A stretch of 64,000 bases of DNA from Blastocladiella emersonii ATCC 22665. Lineage: Eukaryota; Fungi; Blastocladiomycota. A program made the position numbers and the translations under genes. Of the stretch, positions 1,857 to 55,394 are shown piece after piece (the first letter of the stretch is position 1; the number at the start of each line of letters is the position of its first letter). The notes beneath the pieces are model-generated. The model had not been told where the DNA came from. It ran no database searches and saw only the letters and a list, made by a program, of their open reading frames with translations. Location: the NCBI GenBank assembly GCA_025594325.1, contig JANHCV010000002.1, forward strand, positions 1,488,001 to 1,552,000, written 5' to 3'.

Positions 1857-2010
1857 GGTTGCATCAGCTTAACATTGGTCGCAGGCTGTGATCGAGGGGA
1901 GAGTTGATTAGGAGAGGGAGAAGGAACGGGACGGTGGCGCACGCGCTCGCCCCCGCGCACTCCCACCATCTACTTCCCTCCCGAGATTTATACTCGCACA
2001 CTGCTTCACC

Positions 2011-5000: not shown

Positions 5001-6084
5001 ATGGCGACCCGCTCGCGCACGACCCTCTTCATCGAGCTGCGGCGATCCGTGCCGCGGCAACCGGCCGCCGGCCGCTCCGGGCGCGGCGGCGCGCTCGAGT
5101 CCGAGAAGGTCGGGCTCATCTCCGAGCCGCACACGGCCGTCGATGTCGGCCACATTCGCGACCTGCCGCCCGCGTGGGTCGATACGGTCGAGGAGATCGA
5201 GTCAACCATTGACCGCATCCAGCAGCAGTGTATGTCGGTCCGCCATCTGCTATGGACGCGAAACCCACTTACTGACGCGATCCGAGTGTAGTAAACAACC
5301 TCGAGACGCTGCAGAAGAAGCACCTGCTGCCGGGCTTCGACGACCGGTCCGACACCGAGGCGAGCATCGACGCGGCGACCCACGGCGTCACCACCATGTT
5401 CAAGCAGTGCCAGAAGCAGATCAAGGCCTTCGAGGCCAACCATCAGGCCGCCGCCGTCGCCGCACGGAAACGCGGCGCGCCCATGTCGCAGCAGGAGCTC
5501 AAGCTGCACCAGAACGTCACCTCGTCGCTCGCTGCCCGCGTCTCTACACTGTCGACGCAGTTTCGCAAGGGCCAGTCCAACTACGTCTCGCGTACGTCCT
5601 TTCGATCGCGTGTCGCGACGCGTGGTGCTTTGGCCTTACTCGTCGTCGCGTGTGCGTAGGGTTGAAGAACCGATCCGCGAAAGCCTCCCCACTCTTCTCG
5701 CTGTCCGACACCGAGGACGAGGAAAGCGGCGGCGGCGGGGGCGGCACCATGTCGTCGGCGTTCACGGACCAGCAGGTGACGCAGGTCGCGCAGAACGAGG
5801 ACGTGATTCGGACGCGCGAGCGCGAGATCGAGGAGATTGCCAAGACCATGACCGAGATCGCCGAGCTGTTCCGCGACATGCACACCATGGTCATCGACCA
5901 GGGCAGCCTGCTCGACCGCATCGACTACCATCTCGAGGTCGCCGCCACCAACGTCGAGAAGGGCAACGAGGAGCTCGACAAGGCCGTCGTCTACCAGGCC
6001 TCGGCGCGCAAGAAGATGCTCATCTACCTCCTCTGCCTCGCCATCCTCTTCGTCATCCTGCTCCTCGCCATCAAGCGCAGGTGA
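5001..6084 (+). CDS. TLG2: Syntaxin-16/Tlg2 Qa-SNARE; exons 5001-5229, 5292-5591, 5660-6084
   Basis: N-peptide MATRSRTTLFIELRR, Habc region LPPAWVD...KKHLLPGFDD, SNARE motif REREIEEIAKTMTEIAELFRDMHTMVIDQGSLLDRIDY and a C-terminal TM helix. Two GT-AG introns restore the frame. Confidence 0.93.
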
Positions 6085-24300: not shown

Positions 24301-26351
24301 GCCCTGCACCGTGGTGCTGGACTCGAAGGCGGTCTGGATCACGTTCTGCAGCATCACCTCGAGGTCCTTGACCGCCTGCTTGAAGTTGTTGTAGTCGTCG
24401 TGCCACCGCGTCGCCTTGACGTCGAGGATCAGGTCGCGGATCGTCCACAGGTACGCGAGCTGCTGCTCGAACGACTTCTCAATGTCCTCGAGCGACTTGC
24501 CGATCTCGGCGCCCTTGGACCCGCCGAAGATGGGGATCGGCAGCTTCTTGCCGTCGGGCGTGAGCTTGCGGGCAAACTGCATCTGGCCCTCGCACAGCTC
24601 GAGCAGGTCGCGGCACCGCTGCACGAACGCGTCGATCTGGGCGAAGATGGAGCTGTGGTCAAAGTCCCACGGTCGCTTCGTGTAGTGGGTGACGTGGGCG
24701 ACCGTCTTGGTGTAGGTCTGCTTCCACTGCTCGCCGCACGCGACGCTGTCCTGGAGCGACTGGATGCTGGCCTGGGTGTTGCCGTGGAAGATGTCGTCGA
24801 GCGAGATCTTGAGCGAGCACCGGCGGATGATCTCGTTGGAGATCTTGCGCAGCAGGCTGGTCATGCGCTCCTTGGAGTTGTAGAAGCGCGAGTTGGCCCA
24901 GATAATGCGGATGTAGTTGAGCACCTTGGGCAGGATCTTGGCCACGGCGCGCGGCTCGGCCGCCGCCAGCTCGGTGCAGCTCGCCGTCAGCAGCGACAGG
25001 AACTTGAGGTTGTCCTGGGCCTGCATCGAGCCCTCCTGGATCAGGTTCGACAGGCGGTGGAACTGGTCGAGGTACGACGACTTGGCCACCTCGAGCACGC
25101 GGATGATCTGCTGCACCTCGGCGCGGTTGATCTGGTTGCTGATCCCCGACAGGTCCTCGCACCGGCTGCGCCAGAAGGCGATCTCGTCGAGCGGGCCCGA
25201 GTTCTCGGACGTCTCGGACGTGTTCTGGTTGTTGATGACCTCCTTGATCTGCCGCGTCCAGTGCACGAGCAGCGACTCGAGCCGCTGGACCACGTCCTTG
25301 GAGCTCGCGACTACACGCGTCGTTCAAGCGTGAGCGTTGCGCGACGGGTCACCAACCGCGAAATTCAAAGCGTACCCTCGTCAATGGACGGCAGCTTCTC
25401 CTTGGGCACGTAGAGCACCGTGTGGCCCTGCGAGTGGAACGCCGTGTCGGTGAGCACGGCCATGAACTTGTGCAGCTGCCCGGCAAAGTCCTTGCGGACC
25501 GTGTCGGGCCACCCGCGGTTGTCGAGGAACAGCGGCACGTAGACGCCGTTCATGAGCACGACGAGGCTGTCGAGCACCGACCGGGCGATCGTGCCGTACT
25601 GGATCCGCGCGAGCAGGTTGGTCGCCGTCAGCGGGTCAGCGAGCAGCGCCGCCGCGCCGCCGTTTTGGCTCCCGTGCAGCGTCAGCGACCCGTTGTCGGG
25701 CCCGGTGCCCGACACGAGCCCGCCCGCGGGGTGCCCGTTCGCCGCGTGTGCGTGGCCGTTGTGGTGCCCGTGACCGTTGAGCGAGCCGGAGCTGCCATGC
25801 CCGGACCCAGCGTTACCGTACGCGCCGCCGCCGCCGCCATTTGCCGCGGCGCTGTTGTTGCGCAGAAAGTACATGAGCTCGGCGACGCGGTGCGTTGGGA
25901 GCGCCTTGGACACGACGAGCCGCGGGCCGGTGCTCGCGGGGACGAGGTACAGGATGAGCTTGTTGGTAGCGGCCGACGTGGCGAACTCGGCGAGGGCTGC
26001 CGAGTGGTCGGACGTCCACAGGCCGGGCGCGAACCCGGACAAGGTGACGAGGCGTAGGAACCGCGCCTCGAGCGCGCGGAAGTTGGCCTCGCGCGCCGCG
26101 GCCTGCGCGGCGAGGATGGCCGCGACATCGGGCTCGTGCGGCGTGAGGTGCATCTGCGACGAGGTCGCACCGGCGAGGTGCTTGACCGACCCGTTGGTCG
26201 CGGCGAGCGTGCCGTCGAGGAACAGCGTGCGCGAGCCGTGCGAGCTTGCCGGGTTGCTCTGGCCGGGTGCCGCGCCGTTTGCGGCGGCGGCGTCGGGCGC
26301 CGCGGCCGGGTCACCGTCCCGCGTCGGGGTACCGGCTTCGGAGCGGAGCAT
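12333..26351 (-). CDS. DNAH2: Axonemal inner-arm I1/f beta dynein heavy chain (DNAH2/DHC10 type); exons 26351-25376, 25310-12890, 12825-12333
   Basis: The P-loops are GPAGTGKT, GATGVGKS, GDVGVGKT and GVGGSGRQS. The N-terminal tail LVHWTRQIKEV...GPLDEIAFWRSRCEDLSGIS is DNAH2-like, and the C-terminus reads GAYLEGAGWD...YSCPLYYYP. Introns 25375-25311 and 12889-12826 restore the frame. Confidence 0.95.
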
Positions 26352-32500: not shown

Positions 32501-34620
32501 ATGAATGCACCCCCGTCCCGCACCGTGCACGTCATCGACGACTCGGACTCGAGCAGCGACGACGATGGCGGCCTGCTGTACCGCATCCCGACCAAGACGC
32601 TGCTGCGCCGCCAGCAGCTCGAGCGCGAGGAGCGCGCTGCCGCCCTCGCCGCCGCTGCGCCGTCCAGCTCGGCCTCGTCCTCGACGCGTCGCACGGTGGC
32701 CGTCAACCCGCCGCAGCCGCAGCGCGCGTCGCTCGTCATGAACGGCACTTCGGCGTCGATCTCGCGCGTGCCGCGGCAGTCCTCGTCTCCGATCCCGCCA
32801 CCAGCAGCACAGCAACAGCAGCCGCCACCACCTCCACCCGTCGTCGCGCCCGCCGCCATTGAGTCGCCCGATCCCTACACGTACCTGCCGCAGCACATGG
32901 CCCTGGAGCAGCACACGCGGCGGACCGCGCGCCCGGCCGGCCGCTCTCGCTCGTCGATCCTGCTGCCCGACGAGGTCGACGTCGACGAGGACCTGCAGCT
33001 CGCGCTCGCCATGTCGGCCTCCGTCGCGCCGAGCGACGCGCCGGGCCCCGCGCTGCTCGAGCTCGACTGGAAGACGGGCCGGTTCAAGTACCCGGGCGTG
33101 CCGACCGCCGGCCCGGGCTCGCGCCGGCGCAAGGACACCGTCGACCTCAACTCGACGTCGCTGCTCGCCGTCGCGCAGGCACGGGATAACGCGCAGGCGG
33201 CCGCGCTCGAGCGGCTGTGGTCGTCGTCCGAGTCGGACTCGGAGCGCCGGTCGTCGCCGCGCGCCGCGCTCCGACCGACGGCGCTCAAGGACACGGACCC
33301 GGCGTGTCGGCTGTGGCGCCACGCGAGCCCGCGCGTCGACGACGCCGAGCCCGTGTGGACGCGCGCCGTGTCGGGCGGGGCAGGGGAAGCGATTGATCTC
33401 GTGTCGTCCGAGGACGAGGGCATGGACGTTGTCGAAGACGAGCCGCCGCCGCAGGAAGAGCACTGGCGCGCACCGACGCCGCTGTCGCCCATGTACCCCG
33501 AGGACGAGTACCACCCACCGCCACCACCACCGCCACCACAGCTGCAGCGTAGCGTCAGCAGCCCGAGCCAGCAGCAGCAGCGCAACCTACCAGCACCTCA
33601 AACCCTACCTGCACAAGGTGACGACTACAGCGACGCTAGTGACGACGACGATCTGTTTCTCCTGGCGTGAGTCCTCGTCGTCGTCGCCCTCCCGCTACCC
33701 TTCTACTAACACTCACTCTGCCACCCTGTAGTGCAGCGCACCTTGGCGTCTAATCCCGCCCCCGCCGACCCCGACCCGCTCGCCCTCGCGCAAGCCCGCA
33801 CCCGCTTCCTCCGCGACTCGCCGCTGTGGTCGCTCGTAGCAACCGCCCCACCCACCATGCGCGCCGCCCTGCACACGCGCGTCGAGGCCCAGCTCACCGC
33901 GCTCTGGGACACGACTGCCTCCGCCATCGCGACAGGCGTCGTCCCCGCCGTCGTGCCCGTGCTCCGCCCCGAGTCCGCGGGGCAGGCCGGGTCCCAGCTG
34001 CAGCAGATGCCCGGCAGCGACCTCGTCTACGACGGCACGCCCGATCTGACGGACCCCGAGGTCCAGGCCAACGTCAAGCGCGGGCTCGACGCGGTCCTAG
34101 CGCTCGAGGTCGATGCGTTGCCTAAGATGCGTGTCACGGAACTCAAGGTGCGTTTTCTACGTCATCCCGCGACGCGACGGACGCCGAGCTGAGAATCTGC
34201 GCATGTAGCTGCTCGCACGCAACGCCGGACTCAAGACGACGGGCAACAAGGACGCGCTGGTCGCGCGGCTGCGCCAGGTGCACGAGCACGGCGGCGCCCC
34301 GCCGCCCACCGATACCGCGGCGCGCGTCGCGGCCATCGTCGAGGCCGACGAGGAGCTGTACACCAAGGTGCTTCTGTTCGAGGTACGGTTCCCGCGCGAT
34401 GCACGCGCACGAACACCACTGACAGCCCTCGCGAACGTAGCCAATCGACCTCGAAGTCGTCGCGGCACGGCTCGCGGCGGCCAAGATCCGGTGCGGCCGG
34501 CCGGCGCTCATCTCGATTCTAGACGCGCAGGGCGTGCTGCACATGTCGAGCGCGGTCAACGGGCGGTGGGGGCGGTACGGAAGGGACAACGGCGGCGGTG
34601 GCGGAGGTGGCGAAGAGTGA
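32501..34620 (+). CDS. SLX4: Slx4 (FANCP) structure-specific nuclease scaffold; later introns 34148-34208 and 34383-34440, first intron ambiguous
   Basis: Spliced SAP motif LPKMRVTELK|LLARNAGLKTTGNKDALVARLRQV. The Slx1-binding C-terminal domain reads ELYTKVLLFE|PIDLEVVAARL...LISILDAQGV. The N-terminal part carries a UIM/MLR-like motif, DEDLQLALAMSAS. Confidence 0.8.
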
Positions 34621-36058
34621 GGATGATACATTGCTGCTCGATCATACTTGCGTCTGCGTATCGCATGCAAGTATTTACAATGAGCTACGACCGCGCGAGC
34701 CCACTCCCCAACCTTCTTGTTTGCCACGAAGGCATGTCCGCGAAACTGCTCAAGCGCATCGTCCTCGCCACACTTTATTTGCAGCTGAGATCAGGGAGGA
34801 ATCGCGGGCCGTGATCCGCTGCGGCGTGAAGACCGGCGACAAAAGCGAAGGAAGCTACAAATTCGAGGTCCTTTGAGCGCGATGCTGCTGAGTGAGAAAG
34901 CTAAAAGCCATAGCGGCGACGATTGAGGAGCTGATTGAGTCGACGGCAGCAAGGATCGTTAGACGGCAGCGGCGCCATCTCCATGCTGCACAGTTCGGTC
35001 AGTGGAGACCACAAGGTCGCGCACGACGCTGGCAGCCGGGAATTCGGAATCCGCGGCGCGCTGGCCATGGGCGGGCAAAGTGCCGCCTCCAAAACCGCGC
35101 AGTCTCACCGGGTTTGGTCGTTCATGGACGGCGTAGGTACATGACCGTGGACTCGGTCGCGGATGATCATGAAGGCAGCCGACGGGCACGAGCTGGTTTG
35201 GCGAGCGCATCGAGGGCGAGGACGGGTGCCCGTGCACGAGGGCAAGAACGGGTGACCGTGAACGCCGGTTCGAGAATATGGACGGCAACATGACGAGCTC
35301 GCGCAGAGAGATTCAAGGCGGGGCGCATCGTTGAGTGGGGCGGCGTAATCGAAGACGACGGCGAGATCAGCCGTCAGTCGACGGGCAGCAGCAGCAGAGG
35401 CAGGAGCGAGACGGTCGGCGGGCAACTCGAGTACGACTCGAGTGAGGATACTGTAGCGAGCGGCGGGGCCGAGGCAGGTGGCGGTAGTCGGCGTCGGCGA
35501 TGCCGGTCGCCTTCCTCGAGGACAACGTTCCAGTGGTTGACATGATTACATTGCTGCAAGTCATTGGTAGTGAACATGAATGCATGGTTGTCAATTGGTG
35601 TGAGCGACAAGCTTTTTAGCGCGCGGCCCCCTTCAGGAAAGACCGTGCAGGAAACATCGGGCCGCGCGATGCCCGAGATCCAAGGAGAGAATTTGAGTCG
35701 GTGGCGTCGGGTGATGCGGCGTGACACAAAGTGGAGGACGCGGAGGGGAGCTCGCCGCTGCGCTCGCGTGCGAGATCTGGACTCCGGAGCACTCGAAGCG
35801 TGAAGGGAAAGCAGGCGACGGAAATGAATGTAACTCACAACAAACACTTCGTTATGAGGTCTCCGACTGTGAGCCGCGACGACGGGGGTGGTCGGCGTGG
35901 GGTGCTGGAGTCACGGCCGCGCCGGCCACGGTCACGGTGGGCTCGATGGCCGTCTGCGGGCCTCGGAGCGGGTCGAAGAGACAGCGCGGGATGTACCTCG
36001 TGTGTGGGAAGCGATGGTAGCGCGGGCAGCAAGTTCGGGTTGAGCGTGGTAAGTGGGG

Positions 36059-36260
36059 AGGCCGCGAGCGCTCGTGGCGAGGCGCGCGGCGAGTGCAGCT
36101 TGAACGTGACGAACGGGAGGGTATGAGCGCCTGCGGCGCGGTTCGACAGCGATCGCAGCTCGAGCGTGATGAGCAGAAGGGTGGGCGCGCCTGCGGCGTG
36201 ACTCTACAGTGATCGCACCTTGAGCGTGATGAGCGAGAGGGTGTGAGCGCCTGTGGCGAA
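36059..36260. repeat. 60-bp period minisatellite, about 3.3 degenerate copies
   Basis: GCGCCTGYGGCG recurs at 36127, 36187 and 36247, and GATCGCA...GAGCGTGATGAGC recurs with 60-bp spacing. Confidence 0.8.
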
Positions 36261-36459
36261 GCCACGTTAGAGACGATCCTGTGTGATGGGAGGGAAACTG
36301 GGAATAACGCATGGCGTTAGCAGACGTACGGCGGAAAGGGGGCAGCTCGCGCGCGTTGCGAAGTAACAGAAGGGATGAGGTGATTCAACGAAACGATGAT
36401 GGCGCGAGAGACGACGTCCAGGTGTTGACGCGGCGACGCGGGCAGCGGCTACGCAGCAA

Positions 36460-37170
36460 CGACGGCGGCGGCAAGATGATCGCCGACCAAGCGCCTGCGG
36501 CGAGGATTGACGTACGGAGTTGAGTGATGGTATGGTCGTCGGTTATGGTCGTCAGGATCGAGTGAAGCAATGAGATCTGGTCGTAGAGGCGCGTCGTGTT
36601 TCAGCCGCGGCCGCCACGGCACCTTGGCGACGACTGACTGCTGCAACACGGCGCCGCACGAAACGCGCGCCTCAATACTCCAAGTAGGTAAAGGAACCAT
36701 AACGAATAGCAACAGGGCCAGCCGCGAGCGAGCGAGCACCTTGGCGGCCAACGATCAAGGACACGGCTATGAAGCGACGCCGTGTCGCGCTGATCGCCCT
36801 CGCCGCGGCATGCGCCGCGGATCGACTAAGACGGCGGCAGAGTGATCGCAGACTTTGCGCCTGCGGCGAAGATCTACGGTTGAAGTTCAGTGATGGAATG
36901 GTCGTCGGTTATGTTCGCCAGGATCGAGTGGAGAAGAGGGACCCGGTCGGAGAGACGCGTCGTGTTTCAGCCGCGGCCGCCACGCTACCCTGGAGACGGC
37001 GCGGCACTGGACGCGAAGCGCATCGCGAAAGTCCAAGGAGGGAGAGGGATCATAACGATTAGCATCAGGGCCAGCCGCGAGTGGACGCTCTGGCGGCCGG
37101 CGACCAAGGGTACGGCCGTGAAGCAACGGTCCGCGCTGTTCGTGCTCGCTTCGGCATGCGCCGAGGCTCA
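36460..37170. repeat. Tandem direct duplication of a unit of about 366 bp
   Basis: AGTGATGG.ATGGTCGTCGGTTATG at 36523 and 36889; CGCGTCGTGTTTCAGCCGCGGCCGCCACG and CAGGGCCAGCCGCGAG occur in both units. Confidence 0.85.
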
Positions 37171-37524
37171 ACGAACTTTTGAGCACACGGGAAACCGCGA
37201 ACTGGAGCCGCGAGAGCCGACTTGCCTCGCAGAAAAGCTGGGCGACGTCGGCGACCGTGAGATACGTACGCACGCACGCGCGACGGCAAGCACGACGACG
37301 ATTCGGAACGGCACGCACGCCATGACCCATCCAGCGCGATCAAAACCCAAACCGAACACTGTGAAGCGATCGACCTGGAGCGGCCGCCACGCGAAGAGCG
37401 ACACCGAAGGCTCGTAGACGCACGTAAACGCGGGATCACGGTGCAGGGTCAACGCGCGACCGCCGAAACTCGCAGGCGGGGACCGACCGCGCGCCGTTGC
37501 GAGGGCCGACCGCGGGAACGCCCG

Positions 37525-37865
37525 CCACTCCCGCCCGCCCACATCTAGAGAGCGACCTTTGCACAGCGCCAACGTTGCATCAGCCGTAAGAAAGCAGCCG
37601 TACGCAGACCAAGGGTGTAGCGGGCCGAGGGACGGCGCGCGCTTCGCACGCGGTCGCGCTACCGCACGACGAAACGACGCGAGGGGCAAGCACTGACCCA
37701 CTCCCCGCCTACATCTAAAGAGCGACCCTTGCACCGCGCCCACGCTGCATCGCCCGCGAGAGAGCAGCCGTACGCAGACCAAAGGAGAGATCGACCGAGG
37801 GACGGCGCGCGTGCGCTTCGCGCTCGCGGTCGCGCTGACGCGCGACGAACAGACGACACCACGTA
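37525..37865. repeat. Tandem direct duplication of a unit of about 170 bp
   Basis: ACATCTA.AGAGCGACC.TTGCAC at 37541 and 37711; GCAGCCGTACGCAGACCAA and CCGAGGGACGGCGCGCG occur in both copies. Confidence 0.85.
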
Positions 37866-39364
37866 GCGACGACGCCATGATACGTTGATCGACATGAGGA
37901 GATACATTGCAAGTTGCTGGGAGAGCGAGAGAGGGAGAGCGACGATCGGCAGAGAGAGAGCGCCGAGGTCGAGGGAAGCGCCAAGGTGGAGAGAAAAAAA
38001 CAAAAGAACGCTGGACGGTGATTGGCCGAGCACCAGGGAGCCATAGTTTAGCCAGGAAAAGCCGCTGCAAGGCGACGCCGAAGTCACGCGACTGACCGAC
38101 CAATGAAATGGCGGGACGCTCTTCAGGAGGTGGCGTGAATTGAGGGACGGCGGCTAGAGTAATTGTAGGAAGAGGCGGGCGAGCGACAGCGCGCGTCGCG
38201 TTTCGTTTCAGATCAGCATCACGTGAGGCAATTAATCTTTCTCGCACTCGCTGTCTCGCGCAATCTCGACGCGCGTTTGGCGACCAGCAACCCGTTTCTC
38301 GAACTATGGCTGAGTCTTTATCGAACCTGAGAGGGTACTGGGGAGGGTTGCCTCGTTCGGCATCAGATCCGCGGCGGTGCCGCGCTACGATTGTTGCGCA
38401 GCGTCAAGGACGAGTCGCCGAGCCGATCCCGATCCACCCATGATGCAAAGCCTGATCCACCAGCCAACGCTCAATCGGCTCTTCAATGTCAGGGAGCTCC
38501 GAGGTTTCGCGTGAACCCACGGCACGGCCGCACGCTTGGACTGCGACGGATCGGACAGAGGGGAGACGCGTTTTCGCGGCTCGCACGCGCATTGAGCTCG
38601 CTCCAGTCTCCCACGCGCACCGAAGTGAAGAGAAGGCCAACAAAATCCGCTGGAAATGTACGGTAATAGCAAAAAGCAAAAGGATAGTAGTTAGTGGGAT
38701 AGGGTTGGGAGGGTGGGGAGCAGCGCAGGGCAGTATGGGCCAGAATGCAAGGCGAAGGATCGACAACATGGCCGTACCAGCGATTGATGGGATTTCAACT
38801 CGGGCCCGAAAGGGTCCGAACCCTGTTGGCGCCTTCCTACCGAGACACCCCGCCGGCGCGAACCGGTAACCCACCTTATCCACTCCGCTGCGCCCCACCA
38901 TGGACTGAAGAACAAACTTTTGCCGAGTACCTGCCGCCGCGCGCCCTCGTTCAGCATCAGGCCGCACATCCCCTTTGTGAATTGCCTCCGAGAAGGTTAC
39001 TCTCATCACTCCGAAACTTGCTCGTGCACGCACGCACTCGAGCGAGAGAGAGGTGAGCATCACGCGAGGCGCGGTGCGGTGGTGGCGCAACACGTCCCGT
39101 TTCACGTTGCCCCGGAGCCCCGCTCATCGCAGTCTTGTTCGCAGCAGCAGCAGGTCACCGAGAAGACACAATCTGATTGACGGGATCAAAGTTGACGACG
39201 AGTGCTACGGTCTACGCGCATATGGAGCAAGGATCGGGCTTTCACGCACTGGATCAACCAGCCGTTGTCGAAAAGTACGTTTATTCTACTCTCCCTTCCG
39301 CACAAAAACGAACCAAGAGCCCGCCCGCCCGCGGCTCTCGCAAATCTTACACGCGCACGCACTC

Positions 39365-44119: not shown

Positions 44120-45874
44120 ATGCTGGACTCGGTGCTGCAGCCCACCGACATCAACCGGCTGTCGATGCTCGGCGGCGGCTTCATCGCCGTCTTCTGCCTC
44201 GTCTCGCTGCAGGTCCGCGAGCGCCTCTACATTGGCGAGACCACTGGTGCGCGGCCCGCTACAGCTTCTCGCGGTGAAGCCTGACGCGTACTCGTCGTCG
44301 CGGCACGCGTGCTGACCACCACGTCGCGTCTCCACGTAGTCGCCGTTCTCGTCGGCATCCTGGCCGGCAGCCATGTCCTCGGCATCCTCGACACGGCGAG
44401 ATGGGAGCCCAAGGCCCTCGAGACTGTCTTCTTCGAGGCCTCGCGCTTCCTCATCGCCATCCAGGTCATGTTCGCCGGCATCGAGCTCCCCGCAAAGTAC
44501 CTCAAGAAGGAGATCCGGAGTCTCGGCATGCTGCTCACCGTCCTGATGCTGCTCAAGTGGGCGACCACCGCCGCCATCATCCACTGGGTGCTCGGCCTCG
44601 AGTGGCTCGATGCCCTCGTCGTCGCGTCGTGTGTTGCGCCTACCGACCCGGTCCTCGCTAACAGTATTGTCAAGGGCAAGTACGCAGAGCGTCATGTCCC
44701 CGAAAACTTGCGCGACCTGCTCACGGCCGAGTCGGGCGCCAACGACGGCCTCGGGTTCCCGTTCCTCTTCATCGCCCTGTACCTTCGCACCTCTTCCTCG
44801 AGCAGCCAGGCCGTCGCGGACTGGGCCGTCAACATCATCGTGTACCAGATCATCATCGGAATCGGGCTCGGCGCCGTCATCGGGTTCGCCGCGTCGTGGG
44901 CCCTGTCGTTTGCCACGCGCCGCGACTGGATCGACAAGCCGTCGCTGCTCGCGTACGGTGTCGCCCTCGCCATCTTCACCACGGGCTTCGTCGGCTACCT
45001 CGGCAGCGACGACCTGCTCGCCGCCTTCATCGCGGGCAACACGCTCAGTTGGGACGACTGGATCCGCAAGGAGACGGCCGAGGAGCACATCCAGTCGACC
45101 ATCGACCAGCTGCTCACGCTCGCCTACTTTGTGCTGTTCGGCGCCATCTTCCCCTTTGCCGAGCTCGCCCACCTCTACCCGTGGTGGCAGATCCTGCTCC
45201 TGTGCCTCGCCGTCCTCATCTTCCGCCGCCTGCCGTGGGTCGCCGCCCTGTACCGCTGGATCCCCGCCATCAAGTCGTGGAACGAGGCGCTGTTCGCCGG
45301 CTGGTTCGGGCCCATGGGCGTCTCGGGCCTCTACTACGCGTATCTCGTCGCCGACACCCCGACCGCGCCCGAGCGCCTGCGCCGCGAGATTGTCCCGCTC
45401 GTCAGCGTCATTGTCCTGACCTCGGTCATCGCCCATGGCATGTCGATCGCCAGCTTCAAGGTCGGCCGCAAGGTCTCCAACACCAACTTTGTCGAGCTCT
45501 CGCGCACCATCACCTCGTCGCTGCAGACGGGCGCCGCCGCCGCCGTGCGCCGCTCGCGGTCCCAGTCGCGCTCCGCCGCCGCACGCAAGCACTCGCGCAC
45601 CGCCATGCCCGCCGAGTTCACCGACGTGAAGGGTGTCTCGCCCATCGCCTCGCTGTCCGGCAACGAGGCGCTCCCGCCCACGTCGACCGTCGACCTGCTC
45701 CGCGACGGTAACGACCACACGGTCGATATCCACATCGACAATGAGTCGGGCCACGGTGGGCTCGCCGTGGCCATCGCCAGCGGCGTCCAGCCGCAGCAGT
45801 ACCGCGACGCGAGCCCCGCTGGCCGCCGCGGACGGTCGCGCACCCGCGCCGCGTCATTCGAGGAGTCGCGATGA
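44120..45874 (+). CDS. NHA1: Fungal-type CPA1 Na+(K+)/H+ antiporter (Nha1/Sod2); exons 44120-44246, 44340-45874
   Basis: RERLYIGE|, IAIQVMFAGIELPAKYL, PTDPVLANSIVKGKYAE, AESGANDGLGFPF, GSDDLLAAFIAG and EALFAGWFGPMGV. A 93-nt GT-AG intron restores the frame. Confidence 0.93.
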
Positions 45875-46060: not shown

Positions 46061-47605
46061 ATGCAAACGATCATGGGCTCTGAAGTGCCACCCTCACCTC
46101 ACCTATTGACACTTGATGCAACTCATGGATCCCGCGACGGAACGCTGACGCGCGCGCACGCCGCCGTCGCCGCGGTGCTCGAGTCGCAGGCTCTCCCGAC
46201 GCTGCCGCACGACCTCGGCGTGCTCCTGCAGGGCGTCCTCGCGCGGTCGCTCGATCTGCGTCTCCGGTCCACTCGCCTTGCCCTCAGCATGCGGATAGGA
46301 AGCGACAATGCCGAGTGCGCTGCCGCCGCGACCAACCACGGCCAACTAGACTCGGTGCTTCACGACCTCGACCGGGTCCGCGGCGAGGTCGAGGCGCGGA
46401 TTGCGGCCACACTTGTTGCGGGCTACAACACGGTCGACGCGTGTTCACCTCAGCTTGCTATGACCGAGATCGCGGCTGCGGCGGAAGCGTGGGAAACCAA
46501 CGCGCGGTCTCCGCCGACCCCCGCCGCGCAGAACATGCCAACGCTTCAATCCACGACGGTCTCGCTCGATCCCACCTCGGTTTCTTCGATCGCTCCCGCT
46601 GCCGAGGACGGCACATTCTCGTCTTATGCGGGGTCGCTCACCGTGTCGCGGTCCCCCTCGCCGCCTTTGAGCATGCCCCTTTTCCCTGTTGCGCACGATG
46701 AACGACCGGAATCGCCTCGCTGCTCACGCTTGCCGTCACGGAACGATAGCGGATACTACTCGCCGAGATCTCATTTGCGGGCTCGCCGCTCGTCGCGGAT
46801 GCGCTCACGCTCACGCTCACGCTCGCGGTCGCGGTCGCCAGCTCGCTTCCACCACCGGTTTCGCTCACGATCGCCACGTCGCGAGAACTCGCGTCGTCCC
46901 GCGCAATGTGAGAACGGGTACCGTTCACCGAGATCGTGCTCGCCGTCGCGACCACCGCTTCCGCTCCCACGCCGCTTCCAGCGCTCTCCGTCGCCGTATC
47001 GGCTCGGTCCTTCCGCGCTGCGCAACCTCGTCCAATCCCGCGGTCCGAACTTCTCGCTTCCCGCGCCGCCCGGCCGGACCACCACCGCGGACCCGAGCGA
47101 GTTTCTCTCACAGTTCCGCGCACTGGTTCCGCGAGGCCAGCTCGCCGAGGCACTGCTGCTTTCGCGGCCCAACCTCCCGCAGCTCGTCTTTGACTACCTC
47201 GCTGTCACCGCGTCGCCGGACCTCAACGACGGCACGGCAGTGGACAGGTTTCTCGATAGCCTGGATCGAGGTCTCGAGTGGCGGCGCGCCCGCCCTTGGC
47301 TCAAAACGTTCCCGTCGCCTGGTGAGCTCGTGGTCGACTACGGCGCGCGGTTCTGGGCCGCGCTGGCCCGCATCGGTAAGCCCAGCGCGTTCACGGCGCG
47401 GAGGGCGGTCAAGGAGGTGTTTCTCGAGCGGCTTGTCGCGGCCGCGAGCCGTGGAAGCGGTGCGGCTGTCACAAAATTGGCCGCGGCCGCAACGTCGGGC
47501 AAGGTCCGTGCGTGGGCTGCGGATCCAACGGTGTCGCTGGCCGTGATCGTGGACCATCTCGGCGGGATGCGGATTCCCAAAGTCGACCCGGCAGCGGCAA
47601 AGTGA
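46061..47605 (+). CDS. Gag-capsid-like family copy A (intact): helical N-terminus, RS-rich linker, CA-like C-terminus
   Basis: 514-aa ORF that aligns by eye with 49402..51069 and 52069..53220. It contains GPNFSLP...DPSEFLSQF...PSPGELVVDYGARF...KEVFLERL...IVDHLGGMRIP. Confidence 0.7.
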   Translation: MQTIMGSEVPPSPHLLTLDATHGSRDGTLTRAHAAVAAVLESQALPTLPHDLGVLLQGVLARSLDLRLRSTRLALSMRIGSDNAECAAAATNHGQLDSVLHDLDRVRGEVEARIAATLVAGYNTVDACSPQLAMTEIAAAAEAWETNARSPPTPAAQNMPTLQSTTVSLDPTSVSSIAPAAEDGTFSSYAGSLTVSRSPSPPLSMPLFPVAHDERPESPRCSRLPSRNDSGYYSPRSHLRARRSSRMRSRSRSRSRSRSPARFHHRFRSRSPRRENSRRPAQCENGYRSPRSCSPSRPPLPLPRRFQRSPSPYRLGPSALRNLVQSRGPNFSLPAPPGRTTTADPSEFLSQFRALVPRGQLAEALLLSRPNLPQLVFDYLAVTASPDLNDGTAVDRFLDSLDRGLEWRRARPWLKTFPSPGELVVDYGARFWAALARIGKPSAFTARRAVKEVFLERLVAAASRGSGAAVTKLAAAATSGKVRAWAADPTVSLAVIVDHLGGMRIPKVDPAAAK

Positions 47606-47750
47606 TGGGCGCGTCCGTGGCCGCGGCCATGGGGCGTGGCCAACGCGCAGGCCGCCGCGAGCGGAGCGGCGAAGCGACCAAGGTCGACTGTCCCTTTCGT
47701 CTCTTGGCTCCCCCACTTCCTATGCTCAATGAATGAACTTTGCTCTTCCG

Positions 47751-48657
47751 CACTCCATGCAACACATGCATCTAGACTTCTTCTTAAGCATTCAGTGGCG
47801 ACGGAGCTGACGCCGGCATGCGCCGTCGCTGCTGTCGTCGAGTCGTGCACGCTTCCGTCTTCGGCCCGTGAGCTCGCACTCGTGCTGCAAGGCGTCATGG
47901 AGCGGTCGCTTGTTCTGCGTGCGCAACGAATTCGATCCGCAGCCAACGCACGGATCTCGGGCGATAAAATGGTGAAAGGCGATGCGAGCCAGCTTGAAGC
48001 GGTGCTCCTTGAACTCGACGGTGTGCGGGTCGAAGGTCGAGGCGCGGCTTTCGTACCTTTTTGGTGGACAATCTCTCCCTACTACAACAAGCAGCAAAAC
48101 GCTCTCGTCTTCGCAAAACAAGTCGGAGTCGGAGCCCGTCGCAGCATCAGTGTGCGAATTGTTCGAGTGCCTCGAGCCCCAGCATGTGGCTCCGGCTGCC
48201 GAATGCATGTCAACCCGGCACTCAATCTCAATCTCAAGCGCGGCTTCGGCTTCGGCTTCGGCTTCTTTATCGCTTCCTTTCGCTGCAAACGGCGTGCGAT
48301 CGGACTTGCAGGGGAGCGAGACAAGTTCGCGAACTTGGTCGGGGTCCGTTTCGCCGGCCGTCTCACAGTTTCCCCGCTCGCCTTCACGCGAAAGCCGGCC
48401 CAAGGGTCGTTTGCCAGCTCGGTCGCGGTCTCGCTCGCCAGTGCAGGCTAGTAACGGGTGGGTTTCCTCTCGAACACAGCCTGAGTGACGATGGAGCAGG
48501 GACCGATGTGGTCAAGGCCGCCACGTCCAGCAAGATCCGTGAATGGACTTCCACCATGACCGTGCCCTTGACCAGCATCATGGACTACCTTGGTGGGTTG
48601 CGCTTCCCGGGTGATGTACCAGCGAAGTCGACTGGGAACGGTGGAGTCGATAAATAA
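47751..48657 (+). pseudogene. Gag-like family copy B: frameshifted and internally deleted
   Basis: The N-terminus CAVAAVVESCTLPSSARELALVLQGVMERSLVLRA matches copy A. There is a frameshift at about 48030 and a short RS linker, then a jump at about 48490 straight to the tail AATSSKIREW...IMDYLGGLRFP. Confidence 0.75.
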
Positions 48658-48756
48658 TTTGAATGAGCTTCCATACTTAAACCCCTTACCTCGGCGCGAG
48701 TTCAGCTTGAGCCGCTCGAACTGTTCGCCGCGGAGGCAAAGTCTATCAGGTTCCGC

Positions 48757-49230
48757 ATGATGGCCACGAGTACGACTGTGTCCCGCAGCCATCTCAGCGC
48801 GATGTGGTTGCCAGTCATCGGTGCAACCGGTTCAGCGGGTCCCTGCAGCGCGAGGACTGATGGGCATAAGGCATGCCAGTGCTTCAGTGAGCCCACGAAG
48901 CCATTTCGGGGCTTAATTCAGCCCGGTGGTGACGGCAGTGACAGTGAAATCCGGCCGGAAAAGGCGTTATCAGAGGTCGTCGGTGCCGGTGAGGGGCCGA
49001 TGGACGCGCTGCGCCACGCACGTGACATGATTGACATGATGGAGGTGAGCGCACTCGAAACATCGAGTGCCCTGATCGTAGACAGAATCCAGTTGATGGC
49101 TAGAGTGATAGAAGAGGATTCCGCAAGAGAAGATGGACCAGCCAATTCGAGCGCATCATCATCACCATCACGAAGGGGCACGCGTGTTGTCCGATCCTTC
49201 TGTTGCCCTTGCCTCACAATTTCTATGTGA
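48757..49230 (+). CDS. Possible small hypothetical protein ending in CCPCLTISM
   Basis: 157-aa ORF with a helical-looking middle (MDALRHARDMIDMMEVSALE...). No homology was recognised. Confidence 0.25.
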   Translation: MMATSTTVSRSHLSAMWLPVIGATGSAGPCSARTDGHKACQCFSEPTKPFRGLIQPGGDGSDSEIRPEKALSEVVGAGEGPMDALRHARDMIDMMEVSALETSSALIVDRIQLMARVIEEDSAREDGPANSSASSSPSRRGTRVVRSFCCPCLTISM

Positions 49231-49401
49231 TTAAAGCGTGAGGGGGAAAGGGACTATTCTCACTATAATCATTGACATGCTATTCACGCGGCGTCACTTG
49301 ATCGCACCTGGGCCACGCAAGCAACCTGAGACAACTCGTCTCAGAGCTCCGTCCTCGCTGGCACCGCAGCGTCGCTCCCTCACCCCGCCACGCCTGGCCA
49401 C

Positions 49402-51069
49402 ATGCATGCAAACTATCCATCGCCACTTGATGCAACTGATGAATATGACCATGTATTCTCCTTCAAGGGGTGTGCGACTGATCTAACGTTCGGACGGGGG
49501 CTGGCCCCGCTAGAGTCGCTGACCATGCCGACCTCAGCGCCCGAACTCGACAATCGCTTATCAAACGTCCTCACACAATGTCTCAATCTTCGATTGCAAT
49601 CTATTCGCTTCACTTTTGACGCGCGCGTCGCGAATCCGGACTGTACGAGCCGCGTGACCGCGATGGCGAGCCAGCTTCGGTCAACGCTCACCGACTTGGA
49701 ACGGACGCGCGAGGAGCTGGAAGCCCGGATCCTTTATGATGCGAACGATTCAAGTCAGGGCGTCGTAACTCGCAGCTTCCAATCGCCTGGTACACATGCC
49801 ACTTCACAATCATCCCCGCCGCTACCGGTCGCTCCTGCGGCCGAGGCCGCAACCGACTTTCCTCAAGCCGCGTATGATGACGAGACGCTTTTCATGTCCG
49901 AGGAACGCTCGAGCATTGTTTCGGAATCCGCTGACTTGCCCATACTTTTTTCTTCTACGGCGACTTCTTCTCCTCTTCGATCAAACTCCGTCCCGCCGGT
50001 TTCGCAGCCCTGTCACTTACCTCCGCGGGCTGACCAGTACCGGCGCCCTGAACCCAGCCCACCTCCGCGAAAACGATCGCGGAACGGACGATCGCGGTCC
50101 CCGCCTCGTCCGTCGTCGATTTCGAACGGGCGAGAGCAGCGCCCATCGCTTTCATCAATTTACCAAGGAATGCTCACACCGCGATCGCACTCGACTACTC
50201 GCCGCGATTCGCATTCACGCTCCCAGCCGCAGTCGAGCGTTTCTGCCTGCACACTTGCGGCGAGCGACAGGAAACGGCGCCCGTCAAGGTCGCGGTCGCC
50301 ATCGCCAGGCTCTTCACGCTCACCATCGCCAACGAAGCGAGTACGACGTTCATCACAATCGCGCCTCCAGCCACGAGGTCTCCTCTCCGAATCAATCCGG
50401 CGCTTCGAGTCTTCTTCCTCGCTGGCGGTCCAGCTTGAGCCAGGCGAGATTGTGGATCCTCCTCGCCGCGGACCTACAGCTCGGCTGTCTCTAATGAGCA
50501 CCACCGCGCTGCGCAAGCTCGTTCACTCGAGCGGCCCGATCTTCGATGGCCCCGCACCCGCTGGCCGCACCTCAACGACAGACCGGCGCGAGTTCCTTGC
50601 CCAGCTCCGCGCCCTTGTTCCGCCGGGGCAGCTTGCTCGCGCGTTGCTTCTGTCGCGGCCTAACATCCCGCCGGCCGTTGCTGACTACTTTGCTGTCAAA
50701 CTGACACCTAACAGCTGTGACCATAATGCCTCGCGCTTGGCCCTGAATGTTATGAGGTTCGAGATCTCGCGACAGGCGCGGGCCTGGATTGACACGCTGC
50801 CAAAGCCGGAAGAGTCCGTGTGCGACTTTGCCGCGCGCTTTAAGTCCGCTCTCGCGCCTATCGGGACGCTCAGCGAGCTCATGTATCGACCTGCCATCAA
50901 GGAGGCGTTTCTTGCGCGGATCACGGCGGTGCATGGCGACGGCGCCGCGGCCGCCTTGGCCAAGACCGTCGCGTGCAAGAAAGTCAAGGCCTGGGTCGCC
51001 GATGTGGACGTGCCGCTGGCGACAACCGTCGACCACTTGGGCGGGATGCGGTTTCCGGGTGCTCGGTGA
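49402..51069 (+). CDS. Gag-capsid-like family copy C (intact)
   Basis: 555-aa ORF containing GPIFDGP...DRREFLAQL...PKPEESVCDFAARFKSAL...AIKEAFLARI...TVDHLGGMRFP. The true start may be the downstream ATG of MPTSAPEL. Confidence 0.72.
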   Translation: MHANYPSPLDATDEYDHVFSFKGCATDLTFGRGLAPLESLTMPTSAPELDNRLSNVLTQCLNLRLQSIRFTFDARVANPDCTSRVTAMASQLRSTLTDLERTREELEARILYDANDSSQGVVTRSFQSPGTHATSQSSPPLPVAPAAEAATDFPQAAYDDETLFMSEERSSIVSESADLPILFSSTATSSPLRSNSVPPVSQPCHLPPRADQYRRPEPSPPPRKRSRNGRSRSPPRPSSISNGREQRPSLSSIYQGMLTPRSHSTTRRDSHSRSQPQSSVSACTLAASDRKRRPSRSRSPSPGSSRSPSPTKRVRRSSQSRLQPRGLLSESIRRFESSSSLAVQLEPGEIVDPPRRGPTARLSLMSTTALRKLVHSSGPIFDGPAPAGRTSTTDRREFLAQLRALVPPGQLARALLLSRPNIPPAVADYFAVKLTPNSCDHNASRLALNVMRFEISRQARAWIDTLPKPEESVCDFAARFKSALAPIGTLSELMYRPAIKEAFLARITAVHGDGAAAALAKTVACKKVKAWVADVDVPLATTVDHLGGMRFPGAR

Positions 51070-51345
51070 TGGGCGTGCTGATGTGTGGACGTTATACTTG
51101 AACTATATCAATAGCTTACCGGTACACGCCGCCAACGCCATAGATTTGATCAGCGCTCGATGGATGCTAGCGAGGCGTGAGACGCGGTTCCAATCCATAG
51201 ATTCATTGGTCTTTTTGATGAGCGCTTGCGGTCCTCGGTGGCCGCGACTTGAGGGGAAGCCCGTGGGTCGGAAAACTGGTCGCGGGCTGAACCCTGACCC
51301 GCTCATCCTTTTTCTACGTAGCTATCTGCTCGGAATCTGGGACCA

Positions 51346-51854
51346 GTGTCGCGCCTCGGCTCGGCGCAACGCCTCGTAATCTCAAACCCGAAACCCGCGA
51401 GCCCGTCTATCCGGGCCAGATTATCTACTTGGGTCCGCACCCGTTCGAGTTCGCGTCCGGCCCCGATCCTCTCCTCCTCTCACCCACGCCCGCACCGGTG
51501 TTCCCGTCGACCGTTGCCTTGCACACGACGGACCGTGGCTCCGACGGATCCGGCGCGTCGCGCGAGCAGGCGCACCCGGCGCACCTGACGACTTGACCAT
51601 CCAACACCCTCTCGAGACTCCATCCTCACTCACTTCCGCATTCGCTGCGCCCACGCACTCGCTCTCATCTCCTACTCTCTCGCAGTAACGCCGCTCTGGC
51701 GAATGCCGCGACGTCCGCCAAGGTGCGTGCGTGGGTGGTCAGCGCCGAGGAGCCCCTGTCCACGATCATCGACTACCTCGGCGCGATGCGGATCCCGGAT
51801 GCCCCGGCCGCGAGCGCGACGGGACCGCTGGAATGTGCACGAGGCATCGAATGA
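51346..51854 (+). pseudogene. Gag-like family copy D: remnant retaining the C-terminal tail
   Basis: 51681-51854 reads RSNAALANAATSAKVRAWVVSAEEPLSTIIDYLGAMRIPD..., homologous to the tails of A, B and C. It is preceded by decayed Arg/Ser-rich sequence. Confidence 0.7.
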
Positions 51855-52000
51855 CCATGACTCTTGATTTATCACATCATGTTATGGATCGAGGGTCCAT
51901 GGAGCGGGAGAGCGTACCAGCAGGTGGACGCGTTCGACGGCAACGGACGCGGCGGTCACATCACCACCTGCCCCTCCTTCACCCGCCCTCTTTCCACCTC

Positions 52001-52062
52001 CCACTCAATGCAACTAATGGATCGAACGAGCCCACTCTATGCAACTAATGGATCGAACGAGC
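52001..52062. repeat. 31-bp tandem duplication containing the family's conserved 5' motif
   Basis: CCACTCAATGCAACTAATGGATCGAACGAGC is followed directly by CCACTCTATGCAACTAATGGATCGAACGAGC. Confidence 0.9.
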
Positions 52063-52068
52063 TATAAT

Positions 52069-53222
52069 ATGGACCCATGTCAGGACGCGACGCCCACGTC
52101 CGCCGTCGCAGCCGCCTCGCTCACGTCGCGGACACTCCCCACGTCGACGCACGATCTTGAGCGGCTCCTGCACGACACCCTGATTCAATCGATCGATCTA
52201 CGCGCCCATTCCTTTCGCGAACGGCTTCACGCACGCTTAGCGGGAGAGCGTGAAGATCGGTCCGGCGGAAGCCAGCTCGAGGTGGCACTCCGCGACTTGG
52301 ACCGTCAGCGCGAGGGGATCGAGGGACGTCTCTCAACCGCGCGCTCCTCGGCAGAAACTCTCGCCGCGGGCGAAGGCGCGTGGCGGACCGACTCTGGGGC
52401 CCGCTTACATCTGGATTCTGCAGTACTCGGCGTAGTGGGGGCCGAGACGACGCAACAGATGGCCATATCCACTGCGCAGCAGCAGCAGCCAACATCGCCG
52501 AACGAAAACCCGGTCACGCTCTCGAGATCGGCTTCATTTGTGCAGTCCCGCGCACGCTCACGCTCGCCGCTTCCCTCCGACTTGTCGGAAGCACGCTCTC
52601 AGCACTCGAACGCGGTCCTACGCGCCCCTTCGAATCTGGATCAACAACCATCGGCCCCGTCTCGTACGCACTCGCCGACGCGCTCGCTTTCGCGTGACGA
52701 ACGGACTTGGCACCCTGCGGACGATCCCTCTCCTCGTCGAACGCACTCTCGAGACCGTTCTTCTTCGACCCGTCGCCCGCGGTCCCGGTCTCGTTCTCGC
52801 TCTCCACCGCGTCCTTCGTCTCTGCGTCGGAGCGACCGCGAGTGGCGCCCGTCGCGGTCACGGTCCCGACCGCGGGGCCATTGGCGTCGATCTCGGTCGC
52901 CGCCAGCTTCCTCACGCACCCTGTCGCCCAGTGAACGAGCATGGCGCCCAGCAGGGTCGCGATCCAGATCAAGGTCGCGGCCGCGGTCCGCTTCTCGCCC
53001 GCTGTCCCAGAGCGATCGCGAATGGCGCCCGTCAAGGTCGCCGACGCCGCTGCGTTGTCCTTCGCCGAGTTCGCGGCGCTACGAACCCTCCGCCCCGCCT
53101 ACAGCTCTCGACCGGAAAACTGGAGAAACCGCACCTCACTCGCCCTCGTCACGCCTAAACCCTTCCACGCTGCGCGAGCTCGTCCACTCGCGCGGCCCCC
53201 TCTTCGACCGCCCCGCGCCGCC
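52069..53222 (+). pseudogene. Gag-like family copy E: truncated at the start of the capsid-like domain
   Basis: MDPCQDATPTSAVAAASL...HDLERLLHDTLIQSIDLRA, an RS linker, then LRELVHSRGPLFDRPAPP. Homology stops at about 53222, where the sequence becomes the AT-richer 3' flank of DBP9. Confidence 0.7.
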
Positions 53223-53304: not shown

Positions 53305-55394
53305 CTACAGCTTGAGGCGCTTGAGCGGGTCGTTGCGGCGGCGCTTGTTGGCGCCGCGGCCGCCCTTGATCTCGAGGCGTTTCCGCTTCTCGCCCGTCTT
53401 GTGGAAGGACACGTTGGTGACCTTGACCTCCTTGACGGCGTTGGGCAGCAGGTACGCGGGCGTGTTCTTGAGGTGTTTCTGGACGCGCGTGGGCGCAAGC
53501 GGCTGGTCGCGGCGCAGGAACGTGAGATCGGCCGCGTGGTCCTCGAAGTGCGACCGCAGCTTCTCGGACCGGAGCACCTCGCGCTTGAGCTCGGCGATGC
53601 GGGCCTCGCGGACGGCGGTGCGCGTCACGGCGCGCATCGCGTCCTGCATGCGGTACCGGAACGCGTCGACCTGCTGCTTGTTGAACGTGAAGGGCTTGAT
53701 GACGGCGCCGAGCTGCGTCTGCGCCGCGACGATGCGCTTGAAGACGGCGGCCTCGGGGACCATCTGCGTCGGCTTGAGGTCGACGGGCTTGACGGCGGGG
53801 TCCGTCAGCACCAGCGACAGGGACATGCCCTTGCGCCCGCCGCGCGCCGTGCGGCCCACGCGGTGCACGTACGACTGCGGCGTCGCGGGCATGTCGAAGT
53901 TGATCACGGCCGTGACGTGCTGGAAGTCGATACCGCGCGACACGCCGTGCTCCGAGTCCTGCCGCTTGGCGCCCTTGCGCTTGGCCTGCGCAGCTGCCGC
54001 GGCGCTGCTCGCGCCGGCCTTGGCGTCCACCACCTCGAGCGTCTCCTCGGACACGACGTTGCTGGATGATGGCTTGGTCGTGGACTCCTCGTCGTCCGAG
54101 TCGCCAAAGCCCTTCATCTCGTCGTCCGAGTCCGCGTCCGAGTCGCCGAAGCCCTTCATCTCGGCGTCCGAGTCCGTCTCCTCGTCCCCGGCCTGCTCCT
54201 CCTCGGCCTCCGGCTCGACGTCCTCCTCCTCCTCCTCGGCGTCCTCCTTGACGGTGAGTTCGGCCGAGTTGCCCTTGCCGCCCTCATCCGTGGCAATGAG
54301 GATGTCGTAGGTACCCTTGTTGAACTCGGCGACAATGTGCATGCGCGAGTTGAGGGGCAGCTCCGAGTTGAGCACGACCGACTTGATGCCGAACTGCTCG
54401 AGGAACAGGCGCAGGCGGAAGCCGCGGTCGATGCTGTTGACGAACACCATGGACTTGCCCTTGATCAGGCGCAGCTTGAAGATGAAGTACATGAGCAGGA
54501 ACTTCTCGCGGTCGCCGTCGGTGCCCGAAATGTGGATCACGAACTGCGTCAGCGCCTCGTTCAAGCCCTCGGCCGCCGACAGGTCGAGGTACACGGGCTG
54601 CACGAGCAGGCGCGCCGCAAAGTCGGACACCTTGCGCTCGAGCGTCGCCGACGCGAGGAAGGTCTGGTACCGCGACGCCTCGGGCAGGTGCGCCGTCAGC
54701 GCCTGCATGTCAGGCTGGTAGCCGAACGAGAGCAGCAGGTCGGCCTCGTCGATGACCAGGTACTTGAGCGCGTGCATGTAGCCCTTGGGCAGCATGTTGA
54801 GCGGGCCGAGAATGCGCGCCGGCGTCGTGATGACGAGCTCGACGCCCTGCGACATGACCTGGCTACAGATCGGCGGTTCGGGTCAGTTTCGCGTCACGCG
54901 GGCCTTGCAATCGTGGAGTGAACGTACATCTGCTGCACAACACCACCCTTGGCGCACAGGTTGGCAAACTCGAGCTTCTTGGAGAACTTGCAGAAGGCGC
55001 GCACCATGGCGGCGACCTGGTCGGCGAGCTCGGTCGTGGGCACGAGGATGAGGCCGCGCGGGCCCTTGGTCTCGCCGTCGGCCGAAGCGTCGCGCGGGTT
55101 CATGAGGATGTGGTTGAGCATCGGGATCAGGTACGCGGCCGTCTTGCCGGACCCGGTGCGCGCCTTGGTGGCGACATCACGGCCCTGCAGCGCGAGTGGG
55201 ATGGCGCGCTGCTGCACGAGTGTCGGTTCCCGGAAGCCCAGAGCAGCAATCGCACTCTTGATCTGCGGGCACAGGTCGAACTCGGAGAAGGACGTGATGG
55301 CGGCGGGCTTGCCAGCGGGGGCGGGTGCCGCGGCGGCAGCGACGGGCGCGGACGCCTTGGCGGGGCTCGATGCATCAACTGGTGTGTCTGACAT
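53305..55394 (-). CDS. DBP9: DEAD-box RNA helicase Dbp9/DDX56 (60S biogenesis); exons 55394-54928, 54862-53305
   Basis: Q motif PTLVQQRAIP, ARTGSGKT, LVPTTEL, VIDEADLLLSFGY, SATL, SRGIDF, YVHRVGRTARGG, FRYRMQDAMRAVT and C-terminal DPLK. A 65-nt intron restores the frame. Confidence 0.95.

Follow-up and report, generated by a model that had tools for sequence, protein, structure and literature searches.

We analysed a 64,000-nucleotide (nt) stretch of fungal DNA, here called the window, which contains an array of paralogous coding units that are candidate relatives of the Gag capsid proteins of retroelements. Five units on the same strand (copies A to E, 46061-53222) were recovered by tblastn searches with A and C followed by hidden Markov model (HMM) searches. 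The source is Blastocladiella emersonii ATCC 22665: a helicase open reading frame (ORF) at 53305-54852 on the minus strand was 100% identical to a protein of this organism, whose gene sits on contig JANHCV010000002.1 of assembly GCA_025594325.1. The original prediction, made before the source was known, had placed the DNA in a zoosporic fungus, which was right. It had also described five tandem genes. Five same-strand units are indeed present and A and C are intact, but B, D and E are fragments, and an array of two genes and three fragments is overstated as five genes. The motifs that had been quoted for an N-terminal helical segment, an arginine/serine (RS)-rich linker and a conserved C-terminal domain were all found in the translations.

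Copy A (46061-47605, plus strand, as for all units below) is an intact ORF of 514 amino acids (aa) composed of an N-terminal helical domain (46061-46480), an RS-rich disordered linker (46481-47002), in which the densest 100 aa contain 30 Arg and 23 Ser, and a C-terminal domain resembling retroviral capsid (CA) protein (47003-47605). Copy C (49402-51069) is an intact ORF of 555 aa with an N-domain (49402-49830), an RS/Pro-rich linker (49831-50493) and a CA-like domain (50494-51069), the last of which was the sequence used for modelling. The two proteins align end to end with 35% identity (BLASTP, E 3e-59), and their C-terminal domains are 52% identical. Linkers of the array contained 16-28 RS/SR dipeptides and 51-62 Arg plus Ser in their densest 100 residues.

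The other three units are incomplete. Copy B (47735-48654), whose three frames were searched as separate pieces, consists of an N-domain (47735-48049, frame 2), a linker remnant (48123-48446, frame 3) and the tail of the C-domain (48472-48654, frame 1; only the last ~50 codons); it has suffered at least two frameshifts and the loss of most of its CA-like domain. Copy D (51654-51851) is a C-terminal tail of the last ~45 codons, covering the final helix and the terminal DYLGAMRIP, and no recognisable N-domain or linker was found upstream of it. Copy E (52039 to about 53222) is truncated and retains the N-domain, the most RS-rich linker of all (33 Arg and 29 Ser in 100 aa) and the first ~25 CA-like residues. 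Its homology ends 83 nt short of the helicase stop codon (53305), and its ORF continues antisense to the helicase gene.

A 31-nt tandem duplication, 97% identical and in perfect register, marks the 5' end of copy E (52000-52061, plus strand). Copies A, B and C carry versions of this 31-mer at the corresponding end (46108, 47749 and 49422, respectively), and A and C read through the element in a frame other than that of the start codon of E. The spacers between B and C (48660-49401) and between C and D (51070-51650) have a lower GC content (0.57-0.61) and matched neither the array family nor any Pfam model; one inter-copy spacer holds a 157-aa ORF (48757-49230). Exact-sequence look-ups gave no record for A, for C or for a further window ORF. 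A scan for bacterial promoters and terminators is irrelevant for this eukaryotic DNA.

A sister array and evidence for coding

Word-indexed protein, Pfam and PDB sequence searches with the window copies were blank for relatives. A HMMER pass over 1.84 billion representative proteins gave one real match (P0121, KAI9175498.1, E 1.6e-15), a B. emersonii "hypothetical protein" of 556 aa encoded on contig JANHCV010000008.1; another match among the representatives, a He_PIG repeat protein (P0122), was spurious. The gene model of KAI9175498.1 turned out to be chimeric, joining three neighbouring tandem paralogs by splicing (L006:10001-13458). The surrounding locus, designated L006 (JANHCV010000008.1 1153511-1176968, reversed, numbered L006:1-23458), is a second array of eight copies, seven of them head to tail at 6.0-18.0 kb and one inverted at 1460-3385, all situated in ORFs of 257-642 codons. 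In a phylogenetic tree, window copies A and C grouped with the inverted L006 copy (support 99/98), which also has an RSRS linker, and the seven head-to-tail copies formed the other group. Copies were only 20-65% identical in protein, and the duplications are therefore old.

Within L006, the array has on its flanks inverted members of another multi-copy family with weak N-terminal F-box matches (E ~0.02), located at L006:2-1408 (plus strand), 3171-5054 (minus strand) and 17982-19490 (plus strand). A weak PIF1-like gene was also observed at L006:20736-21826.

Outside these two arrays, two scans of JGI metagenomes returned no relatives, and the single IMG/VR match (L001) was a phage helicase and spurious. 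In B. britannica, Catenaria and Allomyces, no homolog was present at a distance of up to 10 kb from the helicase ortholog, the search of these genomes otherwise covering annotated copies; gene order around the helicase orthologs is unconserved anyway, so this synteny test says little. In the sequence collections searched, the family has thus far been found only in B. emersonii.

Both arrays bear the marks of coding sequence. The longest stop-free runs in the array region of the window were 579 and 514 codons, and a run of at least 514 codons occurred in just 3 of 500 Markov-1 simulations of the region. Seven L006 ORFs were likewise longer than the 95th percentile of the longest simulated ORF. 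Pairwise Nei-Gojobori estimates of the ratio of nonsynonymous to synonymous substitution rates (dN/dS) were 0.38-0.40 for A versus C and 0.27-0.61 among L006 copies, values that are rough. The array copies still are, or have for a long time been, moderately constrained protein-coding genes. Duplication, frameshift and deletion underlie their turnover, and the mixture of intact and decayed copies fits the birth-and-death evolution that had been proposed.

Predicted fold and motifs of the C-terminal domain

A first AlphaFold2 model built from two sequences was poor (pLDDT 59.7), and its Foldseek list, in which the C-terminal domain of rat Arc ranked first and the CA of murine leukemia virus (MLV) fourth and sixth, was not trusted. 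With a ten-copy alignment (A4), AlphaFold2 gave a confident model of the copy C domain (pLDDT 87.8, pTM 0.83), which consists of a short N-terminal hairpin and about eleven helices arranged in two groups. When this model was compared with the PDB by Foldseek, 40 of the top 50 matches were retroviral capsids, from human T-cell leukemia virus 1 (HTLV-1), bovine leukemia virus (BLV), human immunodeficiency virus 1 (HIV-1), MLV, Rous sarcoma virus (RSV) and caprine arthritis-encephalitis virus (CAEV), with a best E-value of 1.4; the isolated C-terminal domain of BLV CA had a TM-score of 0.60 at a root-mean-square deviation of 4.3 Å. In BFVD, retroviral Gag or core proteins made up 8 of the top 10 matches, the best being HTLV-3 Gag-Pro (E 0.19, probability 0.60, query TM-score 0.40), and caulimovirid coat proteins were also among the matches. 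Sequence identity to the retroviral CA matches was 12-18%. The capsid superfamily, top-ranked in both libraries, was the one predicted beforehand from motifs alone. A comparison of lobe 1 with lobe 2 by hhalign gave no signal of internal duplication. The confident model suggests that the ~190-aa, all-alpha, two-lobed domain resembles retroviral and retrotransposon CA above any other solved or predicted viral fold.

All ten copies of the domain share E107, and P105, R115 and F116 are almost as constant. E107, R115 and F116 make up an E-x7-R-F motif on the strand-helix that opens lobe 2 (model residues 108-120). Its spacing and position resemble those of the major homology region (MHR, Q-x3-E-x7-R) of retroviruses and Ty3. 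In addition, the domain is followed in five L006 copies, including the RS-type one, by a CX2CX12HX4C motif of strict spacing and by a helical tail, an arrangement that corresponds to CA followed by nucleocapsid (NC) in Gag. The window copies end before this position and contain no zinc knuckle, in agreement with the original prediction, and an HMM of the Cys/His tail had no match in any window ORF. The lineage of the window copies has probably lost this tail.

Profile matches to Gag families were all below the curated cut-offs. The triple-copy protein P0121 matched Pfam PNMA (PF14893) with E 9e-5 and 22.4 bits (cut-off 25) and Retrotrans_gag (PF03732) with E 0.033 and 14.8 bits (cut-off 24.1), and single copies reached E-values of only 0.03-0.19 against Gag families. 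When the ten domains were scanned one by one, PNMA appeared in one member only, and an implausible His_Phos_1 match appeared in three. Two further matches were judged to be due to chance: a PDB match of copy A to an Fe/2OG dioxygenase (E 0.0055), which was short and did not fit the predicted all-helical domain, and a match of copy C to DUF7696 (E 0.015).

Genomic setting and proposed origin of the family

The window array occupies the entire gap between a Na+/H+ exchanger gene on its left (44309-45874, plus strand) and a convergent DBP9/DDX56-type DEAD-box helicase gene on its right (53305-55394, minus strand, one intron). GC content at third codon positions (GC3) is 0.92 in the former and 0.96 in the latter. 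The NCBI annotation calls no gene in the 7.4 kb between them. The public annotation of B. emersonii was generated ab initio with funannotate (PMC9730499), and atypical genes could easily be overlooked by it because it was trained on genes with a GC3 near 0.95. GC3 was 0.56-0.79 in the window array and 0.67-0.80 in L006, compared to 0.92-0.97 in neighbouring host genes, and this contrast probably explains the omission of the array, which is therefore not evidence against coding.

Other features of the window were also observed. An axonemal-type dynein heavy chain is encoded by a single uninterrupted ORF of 4144 codons (12859-25293, minus strand); because its first Pfam domain begins right at residue 1, there is likely to be an exon upstream. 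A region of ~5 kb (34000-39300), unrelated to the array, is ORF-poor, with a GC content of ~0.63 and an unusually strong AT skew (up to 0.27), and contains no Pfam-recognisable gene. ARAGORN called a tRNA-Asp with the unusual anticodon ATC (1258-1334, minus strand), which may be a pseudo-tRNA or a miscall.

The machinery of an autonomous long terminal repeat (LTR) retrotransposon, that is, gag together with protease, reverse transcriptase and integrase between LTRs, was not observed. No pol domain was detected by Pfam on any ORF of the window array or L006, and the repeat search found neither LTR-like repeats nor terminal inverted repeats, the longest direct repeats in the window array being the paralogs themselves (60-77% identity). 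The absence of pol and LTRs noted in the original prediction was thus borne out, and no pol-linked relative was present among the representative proteins. Intact ORFs under purifying selection, as expected of a co-opted gag, were found; orthologs in conserved synteny across taxa, by which Wang & Han (2021) recognise such genes, were not found in the genomes and proteomes examined. Gag profile thresholds were not reached and canonical knuckles were not seen. The linker recalls SR splicing factors, and no RNA recognition motif (RRM) or other RNA-binding Pfam domain accompanied it.

We propose, with moderate confidence, that these proteins constitute a Gag-like multigene family without pol or LTRs, most likely derived from an ancient retroelement gag and amplified in tandem arrays in B. 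emersonii. Each intact protein begins with a helical segment of ~110 aa and continues with a disordered linker of ~170-220 aa, Arg/Ser-rich in the window subfamily and Pro/Ser-rich in most of the sister array, and with the CA-like two-lobed domain of ~190 aa, ancestrally followed by the Cys/His motif. Tandem duplication has spread the family in the absence of pol and LTRs, purifying selection on it is moderate, and copies are lost through frameshift and deletion. The CA-like domain may drive self-association, possibly into a lattice or capsid, and the Arg-rich RS linker may bind RNA, perhaps under control by phosphorylation, in place of the nucleic-acid-binding zinc knuckle. By analogy with Fv1 or Ty1 p22, fast tandem turnover and atypical codon usage may fit a role in conflict, for example interference with the capsids of retroelements or viruses, no less well than an Arc-like role in transfer. 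We class the family as one that works like a Gag-derived family and not as a proven member of it.

Several points weigh against a Gag origin or a host function. Foldseek gave no match at E <= 0.001 in either PDB or BFVD, every E-value being above 0.1, and global TM-scores were 0.2-0.4, low values that would be expected if the two lobes were hinged differently. The CA entries are mutually homologous, and the 40 PDB matches therefore represent one superfamily match and not 40 independent ones. All Pfam matches of the family were below the gathering score; copies A, C and E and the C-domains of the window matched no Pfam Gag family at E <= 10; and Arc, PNMA, Ty3, PEG10 and CA were absent from the results of every profile search of PDB sequences. 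The position of Gln in the MHR consensus is occupied by Pro, and the spacing of CX2CX12HX4C departs from the canonical CX2CX4HX4C and gave no zinc-finger (zf-CCHC) Pfam match. The dN/dS ratios are rough, since dS values of 0.8-1.8 are saturating. The low GC3 and the empty annotation of the 7.4-kb gap are not expected of a well-integrated host gene, and annotated proteomes, the scope of that search being limited to annotated copies in other fungal genomes, contained no homolog from another species. Accordingly, the capsid fold of the original prediction stands in part: a confident two-group helical model was obtained and CA dominated both rankings, but nothing was formally significant and no profile match reached a curated threshold, the window copies having none and the sister protein P0121 only sub-threshold ones. 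Domestication of the family is putative: orthologs were detected neither in the other species searched nor at the syntenic site, and host genes differ from the array in codon usage.

Some of these points would suit an orphan, fast-evolving fungal family whose helical C-domain is unrelated to Gag and resembles it through generic helical bundles and short motifs, an explanation that we regard as possible, if on the unlikely side. Structural E-values above 0.1, Gag-family HMM matches that are all sub-threshold and absent from the window copies, unrelated weak matches in PDB sequence and profile searches and the lack of a pol-linked relative are all consistent with it. However, the fold class predicted beforehand tops both Foldseek libraries, well above many other helical folds; E-x7-R-F falls exactly at the strand-helix that starts lobe 2; a Cys-Cys-His-Cys motif occupies the place of NC in Gag; and the match of triple-copy P0121 to PNMA is at E 9e-5. 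At the other extreme, the copies could be chance ORFs in GC-rich DNA and no genes at all, given that this genome yields many long spurious ORFs, for example antisense to real genes, and that no gene is annotated in the array. This is very improbable: conservation among the paralogs is confined to a single frame, with dN lower than dS, their ORFs are longer than in simulations, the alignment of ten copies yields a confident fold, and the annotation, trained as described above (PMC9730499), could easily overlook atypical genes.

It is also conceivable, and in our view distinctly unlikely, that the arrays are the remains of a gag-only or otherwise non-autonomous retroelement, or of an endogenous virus-like element, which was amplified and is now decaying as selfish or junk DNA. 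Codon usage unlike that of host genes, the broken state of three of the five window copies, the missing annotation of the array, the confinement of the family, as far as visible, to one species and the surroundings of the sister array, which are poor in genes and include another multi-copy family and a weak PIF1 match, all point in this direction. On the other hand, the copies are arranged head to tail and not dispersed, their duplications are old, dN/dS is 0.27-0.61, nine long ORFs are still open, beyond what simulation gives, and LTRs, terminal inverted repeats and pol are all lacking. A more specific form of the Gag-like proposal is that an early-diverging flagellated fungus independently kept and amplified a retroelement capsid gene and that A, C and the sister copies form RNA-binding, capsid-like particles by means of the RS linker, below the reach of profile detection. 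We consider it unlikely. Such particles, by analogy, would correspond in fungi to animal Arc/PNMA or would serve as a defence that poisons capsids.

Comparison with known capsid-derived systems

Co-option of gag is well documented in animals and plants, and just three fungal cases, each detected by sequence, have been reported, all from Dikarya (PMC8321522). A kingdom-wide screen for fusions did not include Blastocladiomycota (PMC10799480), and no co-opted gag has been reported in the literature for this phylum. If the proposed origin is true, capsid co-option also occurred in Blastocladiomycota, and genes of this type can escape both profile-HMM thresholds and annotation, in which case their number is underestimated in surveys based on annotated proteomes. 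B. emersonii, whose life stages are synchronous, is a developing laboratory model in which stage-specific expression and particle formation are directly testable. Should the array instead represent an orphan family or old retroelement debris, it would be of local interest only.

Similar to co-opted gags of the Arc/PNMA type, the B. emersonii family is devoid of pol and LTRs and is predicted to keep a CA-like two-lobed helical domain, and its only Gag-family Pfam signals are to PNMA and Retrotrans_gag, both sub-threshold. Arc also has an N-terminal helical domain and a flexible linker followed by CA, and the plant gene Crtg9 is a co-opted gag that was tandemly duplicated. In contrast to the known co-opted gags, which are recognisable by sequence and show conserved synteny across families, the B. 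emersonii family passes no profile threshold and has no detected ortholog in the proteomes searched; it also differs in its RS-rich linker, its arrays with many decayed copies and its non-host codon usage.

The best structural matches were to orthoretroviral CA (HTLV-1/BLV, HIV-1, MLV and RSV), to which the model is similar in its N-terminal hairpin, its helical N and C lobes and an MHR-like E-x7-R on the strand-helix opening the C lobe. The differences are E-values above 0.1, identities of 12-18% and the absence of the MHR Gln, and, unlike orthoretroviruses, the B. emersonii arrays lack protease, reverse transcriptase, integrase, Env and a canonical CX2CX4HX4C knuckle.

Another group of possible counterparts includes mouse Fv1, sheep enJS56A1 and yeast Ty1 p22, which are fast-evolving restriction factors derived from Gag that bind capsids or poison their assembly. 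Tandem birth-and-death in B. emersonii fits what is generally known of such conflict genes; however, there is no known target element or virus in this organism, and pairwise dN/dS is below 1, with no positive selection shown.

A loose precedent for a tandem array of virus-capsid-derived ORFs kept in a fungal genome is STORM, a domesticated totivirus-like array in Scheffersomyces yeasts (PMC13756089). STORM differs in having originated from the capsid of a double-stranded RNA totivirus, which has a different fold, and in belonging to ascomycete yeasts. No totivirus capsid was among the matches of the B. emersonii domain in BFVD.

The linker itself can be compared with Arg-rich nucleic-acid-binding tails, such as the C-terminal domain of hepadnavirus core protein and the GR boxes of foamy virus Gag, and with the RS domains of SR proteins. 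Unlike in these proteins, the RS region of the B. emersonii family lies N-terminal to a CA-like domain and is not accompanied by an RRM. By analogy, its density of 16-28 RS/SR dipeptides per 100 aa would suit RNA binding and regulation by phosphorylation, and the linker could replace a zinc-knuckle NC.

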